Translations under genes and position numbers: made by a program
Shown: positions 43,937 to 53,474 of the stretch, one piece after another
How positions within the stretch are numbered: the stretch's first letter is position 1
Layout: the number at the start of each line of letters is the position of its first letter
The notes under the pieces: model-generated
What the model saw: the letters and a program-made list of their open reading frames with translations, nothing else
The model's database searches: none
Told to the model about the DNA's origin: nothing
Source: Bugula neritina
Taxonomy: Eukaryota; Animalia; Bryozoa
Direction: 5' to 3'
Assembly: GCA_964035545.1 (NCBI GenBank)
Contig: OZ037765.1
Coordinates: 5,652,698 to 5,716,697 of the forward strand
DNA: 64,000 nucleotides

Positions 43937-46900
43937 TTACAAAAATATGAGCCAGTTTTTCCGCAAGAGTGTAGCTAATAAAGCTAAGAGTATAACTTTC
44001 AGTGTCTCGTATATGAATACATGTTGAATGATGGAGTGGCCAAATAAGCTCGCCCACTCGGCCGTCTCTTCGCTTCCCATTCCTAGACTGTAGTTAACCG
44101 CCAGTAGCAGGGCGACTACCCCCTGGACAGCACAAAATATGTAGAGTGGATACTGAGTCCAGGGGACAAAGAACTTGGTGTGCTCTCCGTTCATCTCCAG
44201 CTCAAGTTGAAGCAGATGTTCCGTTGTTAGATCTAGCGGCTCTTTAATACTCTTCGGTATAACTCCGTGGCAATGCAACCTAAAAGAATTATTTCCAAGA
44301 TAAAAATTCACTCGAGTTTATAGTCACTATCCCTGTGAGAAACCCCGAGTGGGAAAAATTTTTAAAGCGAGCTAAGGACTTATTCATATGTGGCACAGGA
44401 GCAATTATGATTGGATACTCTTCATGACATCACCGCCAGTGTTTAGACTCGAACCATTGACCTCCTCTTTCACTGGGCCAGCCCTCTAGCCACTGCATCA
44501 CGGTTGCTCCAAAAAAAAAAAAATTATTTCTTAGATTCCTACTAATTGTTTAAAAAGGTCTAAAATAAGAATAAAAAAATGAAACCAATAACCTTTGCAT
44601 AAGAAATAGTAACTTTTATTGTTACTGGTGAAATTGTGATATTGAATGACAGTTGACAGTCTTGCAAAAATGACTTGCTAAGAAATAAGCTATGTACTTA
44701 CACAGTCGCATTTTATTGCGAGTAATATAACGCATATATAGCCAAGTACACACTGATATATACAGAAAGAATCAACTTACGCATACTGAATGAAACTGTC
44801 TTTCTGTGCCGTTCTCCACAACCATCTGATCTGCGACGGATCACAATAATATGCGTCAACCGGCTTGGCTGTCACTAAGATGCTGTCTAGTATTTTCACA
44901 TCGTAGCCTATAAAAATATGTTAGAATACTACGGATACTTTTGAAAACAAAATCTATTTGTGGAGAAGAACTAATCATTTTAATATGTACAATTTACTGC
45001 CATGCAACATAGCTCATGTTCATAATTATAGCTGCATTGAGGTTTTTATGCTATTTCTAGAATTTAGAACAAAGAAGTTTTTTTCAAAAGAGATGATAAC
45101 TTTCAATTTTGTTCACATCTGTATATATTATAACATTCTCTACCTTTGATTCTAGTTGTACGCATTAAAAAGCCTTAATCACAGAAATTTTACTATTATT
45201 TCCATTAGCATTATATTTATATTAAATATATAGAATGCATTCTAAAACAAATTATAGGTTTTATGCCTTCAGAAAGAGCTTGAGCCTGACTGAATATTTT
45301 TGGAATAAATGTGCACCAAAAATAGAAAAGCAAAGGAAATAGTTTTGAAAGGGAAGATGAAAGTTCATCATTTTTCAACATTTCTGCCTAGGTTGAAGAA
45401 TAAATTTTTACACTCATACACAAAATATCTTTACAGAAAACAACAGCTACCTTGTAAAAGCCACACATTGATGTCTATAGTTTTCTTTGGTTGCACTAAC
45501 CCAATGTTTGGGTGCACTTCATACACGCTTGAATTGTTTGCCCTGATTTCATATGCAACTGCTTTGCTTAACGAATTTCGAAGCTTGATACAAGCCAAAG
45601 TATCTTTCTCAGGAGATTTGATTATAAATTCCAGATTTCTACAATACCATGACATAACAGTATAATCTACAACACCATGTCATGATAGTATAGATTTTTA
45701 CTGCATATTTGAGCCATGCATGCTATGGTTAAGGTTTAATGGTTTAGAATTTGTGTACTACTAAAATTTACATCTGTGGGTTGGTTTCTTTCTTGTTATA
45801 TTTATTGCAGATACTATTATTTACACTCAAGTTGTGGGCTAAAAGCTATATATTTTATTTACATACATCTCCAACTTACAATATATATATAATATACATT
45901 GCACGGCACCACACAGTGGTTGTTCATTATAATATGATTCATATACTGTAATAATAAATAACAAATATTCAGAACATGACCACTTTTTGAAATAAACTAA
46001 CAGTGAACTAAAGCTTTTAGATATTTCATCTTGCCTAATTTTTATTCACAAGTTATATATTTATAAAGCATCAGTTGTTGAACTTACGACATGAATAACA
46101 CCAGGCTCTTGTGTATCCTGTTACTCTCTCCTGGCATTTTCTCTCCATCTTTTATCATATAAATTACTACAGTGTCTTTATTGTGACAGTCAGGATTGTA
46201 TTTGTCTCCTGGTTTTTGTTTCATCCTGTTACAAGCACCAGTTCCCTAAATAATTCATACCTGCAGCCTCATCAACAATGCTAGAATTTCTCGAAATATA
46301 ATGTTATAAGTTACTAAGCATGTGGCCTAGTGGTTAAAGCACTAGCTTATTAAACATTTGTTTGATCTCCAGTAAAAGTCATTAGTAATGTTAGGAAGGA
46401 AATTTAGTCATAAATGCTCCTTTTCAACAATAGAAAACAAGTCTTTAAAAATCCTACTTCTCCCAGGGGTTTTCACAGGGATGGTGACTATAAACCCATA
46501 TGAGTTTTATTATATGATAGCAATTAAAAATGAGCTAACTAACTTGGGTAAGTATAAGTAGAGGTTAGAATGGGTTACCCTAGGAGAGCTAGTTATCAGG
46601 GTAGGTATAAGTATAGGTTAGTGTAGGTTACCCTAGGAGAGCTAGTTATCAGGGTAGGTATAAGTATAGGTTAGTATGGGTTACCCTCGGAGAGCTGGTT
46701 ATCAGGGGTTTAGTTGGAGTTATCTGTTCATCGGATACAGAACTGCTCTCATCCTCACTTGAGCTAGATGTGGCTGCATTGCAGTTCCTATTTCTTGTAG
46801 TGACCTATAATAATTATCGACTCTAAAGTCTAACAACAATTTGTAATATAATATAATACATATTAGTTACAGTTATAAATTAATGAATGGATATAGCACG

Positions 46901-52900: not shown

Positions 52901-53474
52901 AAATATGTGTCATAAGTTTTATAGAACTCAGAAATATTTCAAGATAATATTAGCTTTTTTAACTCCTATAATGCTTTGTAAAGTTTTAGCATTAAATAGC
53001 TACACTTGTAGCCATGTAAAATAAAACCAGTATAGTTGCCAGTGGTAAAGGCTCTAAAATTGTTGCACTCTATATTATTTACTTGCATGAAAGATGTTGG
53101 CAAAGAATTTTGATACAGTGAAAATAAAATAACTATGAAAATAGAACTTAATTAAAAAAAAATTCATTATATGAATGTAAATGCATAAAAATGTGATAAC
53201 ATTCAATTTGTACTATTTTAACATTCTGCAGGCTGCATGCTACTACAAATATATAAATCAATATCACAAAATATAGCCTATTATTTGTATGGGTGTTTGA
53301 ATATAACATTACTCACCTTAATAAATCTACCGTTGTTTAAAATTAAAGTTGTGATAAATAAAAAAATAAAAATAAAAAAGATTACCACAGCACAAAATAT
53401 TATCCCCAACATTTAGACTAAAGGATTACCAACTGTGACCGAGATCTTTGTGTCCGGCGCAATGTGCTCCCCAT
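43937..53474 (-). CDS. Truncated polycystin-1-like protein: PLAT + TM2-3 + loop containing an MSP domain + TM4-5; exons 53474-53430, 52898-52811, 52468-52334, 52087-52021, 51633-51490, 50923-50674, 50146-49978, 49535-49381, 48249-48169, [unresolved exon(s) ~47250-47935], 46804-46685, 46245-46088, 45638-45451, 44907-44781, 44279-43937
   Basis: PLAT: [67 protein letters not shown]1-type HLWLTVL segment follows. MSP: [62 protein letters not shown]1 TM4-5-like end: [51 protein letters not shown]. Phases are consistent except for the central gap. Confidence 0.72.
44302..44510 (-). mobile_element. Most complete copy of the tRNA-derived SINE
   Basis: Minus strand: A box TGATGCAGTGG and B box GGTTCGAGTCT, with the same body and tail as the 26760 copy. 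Confidence 0.8.
46316..46510 (+). mobile_element. Diverged SINE copy
   Basis: TGGCCTAGTGGTTAAAG head, ATGTTAGGAAGG...TAGTCATAAATGCTCC body, GGGGTTTTCACAGGGATGGTGACTATAAAC tail. Confidence 0.7.
46548..46706. repeat. 3 x 53-bp tandem repeat spanning an exon/intron donor of the PLAT-MSP gene
   Basis: Units start at 46548, 46601 and 46654; each contains GGTTACCCT(A/C)GGAGAGCT(A/G)GTTATCAGG. Confidence 0.85.
48260..48430. repeat. ~15-bp minisatellite (TTACAGTATTGTATAG-like)
   Basis: Visible tandem units next to the acceptor at 48250. Confidence 0.8.
48840..49360. repeat. Degenerate pentanucleotide microsatellite (TATTA/TATTG/CATTG)
   Basis: Directly visible; source of the Y/I/L/C-rich ORFs. Confidence 0.9.
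51341..51460. repeat. (CA)/(CACACG)n microsatellite
   Basis: Directly visible. Confidence 0.95.
52564..52656. repeat. (TA)n microsatellite
   Basis: Directly visible. Confidence 0.97.

Follow-up and report, generated by a model that had tools for sequence, protein, structure and literature searches.

Proteins of the polycystin-1 (PC1) family place a REJ/GAIN/GPS ectodomain before their first transmembrane (TM) helix, follow this helix with a cytosolic PLAT domain and four further helices, and end in a six-helix TRP-like C-terminal domain. To our knowledge, the PLAT domain and the first five helices are always fused to the ectodomain and the channel-like half in known members of the family, and the role of TM1-5 plus PLAT is poorly understood for this reason. 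The second set of described proteins that concerns us is the VAP/MOSPD family, whose hallmark is the MSP domain. VAP-family MSP proteins are cytosol-facing tethers of the endoplasmic reticulum (PMC6030701, PMC9213790).

Here, we describe a gene of the bryozoan Bugula neritina that combines features of both families. It lies on the minus strand, at 53412-43937, of a 64,000-nucleotide stretch of contig OZ037765.1 (assembly GCA_964035545.1, positions 5,652,698 to 5,716,697; hereafter the window), and very probably encodes a truncated and re-equipped polycystin-1 paralogue. An earlier note, made by a model from the sequence of the window alone, had proposed a PLAT domain and a PKD1-type membrane block with an MSP domain in the TM3-TM4 loop and with neither ectodomain nor channel; this architecture was upheld as that of one gene, with corrections to its start, one exon and the number of helices.

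A predicted gene of 15 exons conserved in relatives

The gene was modeled as 15 exons of consistent phase that join into one frame of 775 codons followed by a single terminal stop (2328 nt in total). Splice sites were set by phase and by comparison with relatives, which were found by exon-level protein searches of other assemblies and whose contigs were then read. Profile and database searches were likewise made exon by exon, and the bit scores given below are single-exon scores. The 14 introns are GT-AG throughout, save the one after exon 10, which is read as GC-AG: the window has gctagt at this donor, and the relatives have gt at the same place (gttagt in L027).

At least three relatives with 63-81% identity were present in metagenome assemblies. 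One of them, a 34-kb contig read as L021/L025, shows exons 1-8 and 10-15 in the same order as the window, all on one strand, while the second, a compact contig of 5.1 kb (L027), holds exons 6-15 within 4.3 kb. Ten exon lengths are identical between the window and L025 (88, 135, 67, 144, 250, 169, 155, 188, 127, and 343 nt), AG and GT stand at matching positions, and all splice phases agree, the relative having been checked at the boundaries. To assess selection, as the earlier note had suggested alongside the search for orthologues, we compared the proportions of nonsynonymous (pN) and synonymous (pS) differences: pN was 0.19 and pS 0.82 (saturated) between the window and L025 over 659 aligned codons, and 0.18 and 0.84, respectively, between the window and L027 over 549 codons. 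Constraint was strongest in exon 7 (pN 0.08-0.09), at the end of the PLAT domain, and in both MSP exons (0.12-0.15). Linker exons 9-11 change rapidly (~0.4), yet they are open and in phase 0->0 wherever found (exon 9 in L027; exons 10 and 11 in L025 and L027). The exons are thus colinear in two relatives and under purifying selection, and the pN/pS values together with the open, phase-kept linkers rule out a pseudogene and make two separate genes unlikely.

A decaying, functionless remnant of a duplicated polycystin gene would have been consistent with the truncated architecture and with a TM2-3 exon devoid of the family's FTRxQR motif. It is extremely improbable, however, given that the frames are open in all species seen, that splice sites are conserved, and that pN/pS is ~0.2 with saturated synonymous sites. 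The alternative of two adjacent genes, one for PLAT-TM2-3 and one for MSP-TM4-5, draws on the poor conservation of the mid-loop exons 9-11 and on the one junction that needs a GC donor. Against this, the linker exons are open and in phase 0->0 in every copy recovered, they are separated by just 130-600 nt in the compact L027, no start codon past exon 8 is conserved, and a distant homologue (L001, described below) has TM2-3 and a 700-residue loop in one exon with TM4-5 after it; we consider two genes very unlikely and treat the locus as one.

The roughly 15 phase-consistent exons claimed in the earlier note stood as a 15-exon frame, of which the start and one exon had been wrong. The start MGSTLRRT at 53474 belongs to an 18-codon upstream open reading frame (ORF; 53419..53474, minus strand) that ends before exon 1 and has no counterpart in L021, the upstream ORF there being unrelated; it was dropped for the conserved ATG at 53412. 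The exon proposed at ~50370-50131 as a continuation of TM3 was rejected as well, since it is not conserved and no legal pair of splice sites would join it to the next exon. TM3 instead runs from exon 6 into exon 7, a direct phase-0 junction in both relatives that carry it, and the I-x-E-x-I-x-R-x-I-x-P pattern after TM3 is also present in L001, uninterrupted within one exon. In the region 47250-47935, which the earlier note had left to be resolved, only 47529-47323 is coding; a candidate exon near 47935 was discarded, since the compact orthologue L027 leaves no room for it.

PLAT domain and putative polycystin-type helices

All exons lie on the minus strand. Exon 1 (53317..53412, phase 0->0, donor GTGAGT) consists of an ATG with a stop in frame directly upstream, a 24-residue hydrophobic stretch that would form a TM1-like signal anchor (Kyte-Doolittle score 3.35), an N-x-G motif, and a consensus donor. 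Its orthologue in L021/L025 (323-421) has the same arrangement, with an ATG, 33 codons versus 32, the common N-x-G, a GTAAGT donor, and the same phase, and lies in non-AT-rich sequence. This conserved helix raises the number of TM segments from the four counted previously to five: by hydropathy, exon 1 holds one of them and exons 6 and 15 hold two each.

Exon 2 (52811..52898; 88 nt in both species, AG/GT kept, 64-69% identity in L025) encodes the TM1-PLAT linker and PLAT strand 1; its VPF motif, judged by eye only, corresponds to IPF in human PC1. The PLAT domain itself, detected at E 0.023 in raw minus-strand open segments (52248-52736), was resolved at the exon level. Exon 3 (52334..52468; 135 nt in both species) matched PF01477 at profile positions 13-57 with 16.5 bits (E 0.014; orthologue, 17.4 bits), exon 4 (52021..52087; 67 nt in both, 71-74% identity in L025) covers the middle strands, and exon 5 (51490..51633; 83% identity in L025 and 71-78% in L017/L015) matched profile positions 80-108 with 13 bits before running into a linker. 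Exon 5 also matched the PLAT exon of the distant homologue L001. The claimed PLAT domain is therefore borne out by colinear matches that score alike in the orthologue, and the exon 1 helix followed by these exons reproduces the PKD1-family order of TM1 and then a cytosolic PLAT.

Exon 6 (50674..50923; 250 nt in the window and L025, 67-75% identity in two relatives) was found where an HLW/TM2-TM3 exon had been predicted, and comprises the HLW motif and two hydrophobic segments, TM2 and TM3, joined by a short outer loop. Where the family has FTRxQR, it reads IFNGCTA. A four-orthologue profile of exon 6 was placed by hhalign on the HIW/FTR/TM2 region of a true PC1 homologue with P 0.0074, while exon 6 gave nothing significant in BLASTP against that homologue, in a profile search of its own genome, or in a search of PDB. 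The best non-self match of exon 6 in the genome (C7:8552256) was rejected as degenerate, repeat-like sequence without PKD features. BLASTP of single PLAT and TM exons against the true PC1 homologue was likewise not significant. Sequence searches of PDB that started from exon 6, from exon 15 alone or as a four-sequence profile, or from TM2-3 of L001 returned chance membrane proteins only and no polycystin. The TM1-PLAT-TM2-3 exon of the genuine PC1 homologue of this genome, for its part, matched human PC1 with E 1.6e-44, and its TM4-5 exon, like exon 15, found no solved polycystin.

We then analyzed where in the genome the TM4-5 exon finds its relatives. Exon 15 (43937..44279; 343 nt) encodes the end of the MSP domain, an amphipathic helix, TM4, an outer loop, TM5, an RKNWLxF tail, and the stop, with two hydrophobic segments. 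Its non-self matches across the 216 Mb of its own genome were few and weak (E 0.04-9), and two of two and at least three of six of them fell at the TM4-5 position, between the PLAT and channel domains of PKD1-like genes. At least four PKD1-like genes were recovered in this way (C3:32111418, C3:31855732, C1:24712573, and C1:25957470), one of them being the gene that matches human PC1 with E 1.6e-44; two of three matches in a C6 tandem array also occupied the TM4-5 position. Given about a dozen such loci, the chance of at least four of eight matches landing there is, by a rough estimate, ~1e-12. Residues common to the matches include (F/L)P-x-W ahead of TM4, an outer-loop Trp and Ser, and (E/Q)-x-(L/I)-K-V within TM5. 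The PKD1-type TM4-TM5 block that had been claimed is thus supported by matches that are individually weak and position-specific. The C6 array itself (G000:C6:11707339-11785711, minus strand) has three weak TM4-5-like matches spaced ~36-42 kb apart and looks like a polycystin-1-like tandem array, two of the three matches sitting ~7 kb upstream of subthreshold PKD_channel matches.

The loops connecting TM2 with TM3 and TM4 with TM5 are short and acidic, and basic residues follow TM1, TM3, and TM5. On this pattern, which fits the positive-inside rule and the topology of PC1, the N-terminus would lie outside or in the lumen, and the PLAT domain, the juxtamembrane segment, the rest of exons 7-14 with the MSP domain, and the C-terminus would face the cytosol.

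An MSP domain in the TM3-TM4 loop

The predicted cytosolic loop begins with exon 7 (49978..50146), a juxtamembrane segment past TM3 with a basic flank, which is the most conserved exon (86-88% identity) and has no Pfam match. A Met within it is not a start, because the relatives have Arg there. An invariant motif in this exon may represent juxtamembrane palmitoylation cysteines or a small metal site. Exon 8 (49381..49535; 155 nt in the window and L025, 73-76% identity) encodes a conserved charged segment that is probably helical.

A Ser-rich loop, as had been anticipated, follows. Exon 9 (48169..48249, phase 0->0) is a Ser/Thr-rich linker with good AG and GTAAGT sites, and L027 has a homologous 60-nt exon that starts (R/K)LRxGYxSG. 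Exon 10 (47323..47529), the linker exon whose donor is read as GC, has a 68-codon counterpart in L025 and in L027, with 36-42% identity (E 1.9e-7), and exon 11 (46685..46804, phase 0->0 in three species) is an acidic Ser-rich linker with an NxNCNA...PLITSSP block in common with L027. The donor of exon 11 lies inside a 53-nt tandem repeat of 3.1 copies (46546-46707, Tandem Repeats Finder) in which AGG|gtaacc is duplicated in each copy, and alternative donors in this repeat could lengthen or shift the Ser-rich linker. Ahead of the MSP domain lies a conserved beta-rich segment in exon 12 (46088..46245; 57-72% identity, phase 0->2 in three species).

The MSP domain, claimed at 45638-44270, was the clearest of the profile matches. 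Raw open segments matched Motile_Sperm at 45434-45679 (E 1.4e-9), and exon 13 (45451..45638; 188 nt in the window and L025, 77-81% identity) by itself reached 38.6 bits against PF00635 (E 1e-9, profile positions 17-67), above the cut-off of 25.9 bits, with 44.2 bits for the orthologue; the exon thus carries the MSP feature of the VAP/MOSPD family. Its best solved relatives in PDB were VAP-A (E 0.0013), Scs2, and nematode MSP. Exon 14 (44781..44907; 127 nt in the window and L025, 76-78% identity) is assigned to the second half of the domain by its phase linkage to exons 13 and 15; on its own it gave no profile match, and alignment tools returned none for it. MSP exons are present in both relatives whose MSP region is available.

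Since VAP-type MSP domains bind FFAT motifs, we examined the corresponding positions. The strand that aligns with VAP-A FKVKTTAPRRY reads YEIRAN in the window, as previously noted, and YEIRSNNPNVY in L025, and most of its basic residues are lost; the electropositive surface that holds the acidic FFAT tract would therefore be largely gone. The second FFAT-binding pair is K-x-M in VAP, where it comprises the residues mutated in the KD/MD variants, and R-x-L in MOSPD2 (PMC6030701). By eye, a K-I-L triplet in exon 14 may correspond to this pair.

These features bear on the possibility that the protein is a VAP-like contact-site tether, in which the MSP domain would engage proteins of another organelle through their FFAT-type motifs and the helices would be a mere anchor. 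Such a role would fit an MSP domain that is the best profile match, an exon 13 with VAP-A and Scs2 as its best solved matches, MSP exons that are among the most constrained, and a family of cytosol-facing tethers at the endoplasmic reticulum (PMC6030701, PMC9213790). It is at odds, however, with the loss of most basic residues of the FKVKTT strand and with the layout of VAP-family proteins, which are tail-anchored rather than polytopic and have a single tail anchor with an N-terminal MSP domain, whereas here the domain lies between TM3 and TM4 of a five-helix protein. In addition, the distant homologue has this membrane module although no MSP domain was seen in it, which argues that the module has a role of its own. 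We therefore regard a classical tether as unlikely, and as a weaker alternative to a cytosol-facing scaffold built on a polycystin-type helix bundle, the reading we prefer.

A protein without ectodomain and channel half

To examine whether the chain extends beyond exons 1 and 15, we compared both ends across relatives and searched the window for further PKD1-type exons. In the window, P0001, P0002, L025, and L027, the RKNWLxF tail is closed by a stop at one and the same codon (43937-43939 in the window, where the ORF had been said to end); the stop of the distant P0003 falls within nine residues of this position. At the other end, an ATG with an in-frame stop just upstream is present in both the window and L021/L025. 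None of the 40 genome-wide matches of the PKD_channel profile (PF08016) fell within the window, in keeping with the claim that the channel domain is absent. When the window was searched with translated exons of two PKD1-like paralogues, only the TM4-5 exon matched. No REJ/GAIN exon was found in the window, the REJ and GPS profiles not having been run on their own. In place of the family's REJ/GAIN/GPS region, an ATG stands directly before the TM1-like helix, and in place of the six-helix TRP-like domain, a stop is kept past TM5 in all orthologues recovered. Together, the context of the start and stop codons and the window searches indicate a protein without an ectodomain and without the channel half.

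The neighboring genes frame the locus closely. Downstream lies ADSL (adenylosuccinate lyase), convergent on the plus strand, with ADSL_C at 42870-43112 and a last exon reaching ~43608, ~326 nt from the stop, in agreement with the ~330 bp given earlier. Convergent ADSL is downstream in the window and in L027-L030, while in L025 a different convergent gene lies ~350 nt away, so that synteny broke right past the conserved stop codon. The upstream neighbor, likewise on the minus strand, is a GLI/GLIS-like C2H2 zinc-finger gene (64000 to ~57200). These findings make it very improbable that the gene is a fragment of a longer polycystin-1-like gene with overlooked ectodomain or channel exons. The case for a larger gene is that all other PLAT-plus-membrane genes checked in the genome are large PKD1-like genes with channel domains, and that the model was drawn up by comparing sequences. 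Set against this are an ATG that two species share and that a stop immediately precedes, a stop codon whose position is identical in five sequences, convergent downstream genes that differ between species, an upstream zinc-finger neighbor, and a 64-kb window without a PKD_channel match or other paralogue-like exon.

A distant homologue with the same membrane module

An exhaustive search with exon 15 of 1.84 billion representative proteins returned three fragments, and no annotated full-length protein was among the matches. The distant homologue P0003 (locus L001, on the 840-kb eukaryotic ENA contig ERZ24900295 ctg6236l) shows 33% identity over the last exon (E 2.9e-5). At this locus, a PLAT exon (E 0.0022) precedes an 875-codon exon with TM2-3 and a long loop, after which comes a TM4-5 exon. 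The loop spans ~700 residues within the single exon and is nonglobular or helical, and no MSP signal was detected in the open segments tested at this locus; the channel-less core of PLAT plus helices would thus either predate the MSP insertion or have lost the MSP domain here. A word search with the 875-residue exon returned only L001 itself. Look-alikes in the ESM Atlas were unnamed eukaryotic fragments, among which a flatworm cluster of 331-residue PLAT proteins scored 0.76 and is a candidate lead only.

Repeats and other features of the window

Two polyadenylation-like signals (AATAAA and ATTAAA; 43645..43683, minus strand), consensus matches from a pattern scan, lie 258 and 291 nt past the stop. 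Several introns hold simple repeats that give rise to long spurious ORFs: an 8-nt unit (ACACGCAC) in 14.5 copies at 51341-51458, a TA dinucleotide repeat of 70 copies at 52533-52666, and a long TATTA-rich array with a superperiod of 112 nt at 48826-49361. A short interspersed repeat occurs in two introns (44292-44429 and 46411-46534, minus strand) and on another chromosome (L006 ~4000-4122, G000:C5:11.174 Mb), with 52% translated identity.

The zinc-finger gene (57200-64000, minus strand) contains a very long poly-Gln/His tract at ~57650-58230. Between it and the promoter region of the polycystin-like gene lies a minisatellite of 33-nt units (54223-54706; 14.7 copies, 93% identity) that is open in two frames through its periodicity only. 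An intact 552-codon ORF for a pogo/Tc5-type transposase (34042-35697, plus strand; DDE_1 E 1e-41, HTH_Tnp_Tc5 E 4e-15) sits close upstream of the ADSL exons, within an island of higher GC content. In L025, the convergent neighbor is an intronless 335-codon repeat ORF rich in Ala/Pro/Lys (12723-13730, minus strand).

Interpretation and proposed role

Taken together, the most probable explanation, and one we consider likely overall, is a five-pass, channel-less, and ectodomain-less polycystin-1 paralogue with an MSP insert. Several points weigh against it. No single PLAT exon reaches the Pfam cut-off of 23 bits; the homology of TM2-3 to PC1 is weakly supported; and the TM4-5 exon, alone or as a profile, matches no solved polycystin. 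The gene model rests on sequence and on comparison with relatives, and the junction after exon 10 appears to require a GC donor. In the MSP domain, finally, the basic residues of VAP's first FFAT-binding strand are replaced.

As for mechanism, a protein of this kind would neither conduct ions nor read extracellular ligands itself, and a membrane-anchored scaffold would be the most plausible role. The PLAT domain would attach to the inner leaflet, with the MSP domain recruiting, via a short linear motif, a partner from the cytosol or from another membrane, and the TM1-5 bundle may dock onto polycystin/TRPP-type channel subunits. This scaffold or regulator mechanism is put forward tentatively, as a possibility that falls short of a likely one. 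A bolder version, which we think doubtful, is that TM1-PLAT-TM2-5 might be an autonomous unit acting in trans, as a regulatory subunit of TRPP/PKD2-like or PKD1-like channels that the MSP domain would couple to cytosolic or other-membrane partners. If true, this would be a naturally "split" polycystin.

The domain architecture is new within the polycystin-1 family: two of the family's defining features, ectodomain and channel, are missing, and TM1-PLAT-TM2-5 is kept. A literature search found no paper that joins a PLAT domain with an MSP domain, nor one that relevantly links a polycystin with FFAT or MOSPD2. An isolated copy under purifying selection offers a small, tractable protein for asking what the module does alone, and this copy carries a recognizable adaptor domain in a loop that is long and unstructured in PC1. 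The TM3-TM4 loop accepts whole-domain insertions, an MSP domain here and ~700 residues of other sequence in the distant homologue. The weight of these points is limited by the non-model phylum and the sequence-level nature of the findings.

Comparison with known systems

Other polycystin-1-like genes in this genome, for example at C3:32.11 Mb and C1:24.71 Mb, resemble the gene in their PLAT-to-membrane layout and in a weak, position-specific similarity of TM4-TM5; they differ in keeping TM1 with an upstream ectodomain and a PKD_channel domain, and the TM3-4 loops seen in them are short and without MSP. The L001 homologue shares the PLAT exon, TM2-TM3, an extended cytosolic loop and TM4-TM5, and its stop falls at almost the same position. 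Its loop differs in being a single-exon stretch of ~700 residues, in which no MSP domain was detected.

With the polycystin-1 family at large (PKD1, PKD1L1-3, PKDREJ, and the sea-urchin REJ proteins), the predicted bryozoan protein has in common TM1, a cytosolic PLAT, H-x-W, a putative TM2-TM3 block, an extended cytosolic loop, and TM4-TM5 bearing the W...S...(E/Q)x(L/I)KV signature, all in the same order and predicted topology. Unlike these proteins, it lacks a REJ/GAIN/GPS ectodomain or stalk, its ATG standing immediately ahead of TM1; the TM6-11 channel-like domain, the TOP domain, the coiled-coil tail, and FTRxQR before TM2 are likewise missing; and it has gained an MSP domain in the TM3-TM4 loop. 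To VAP-A, VAP-B, and Scs2 and to MOSPD1-3 it is alike in a cytosol-facing MSP beta-sandwich on a membrane, predicted in the present case. Those proteins, however, are single-pass and tail-anchored with the MSP domain at the N-terminus, whereas the bryozoan protein would carry it within a loop of a five-pass protein.

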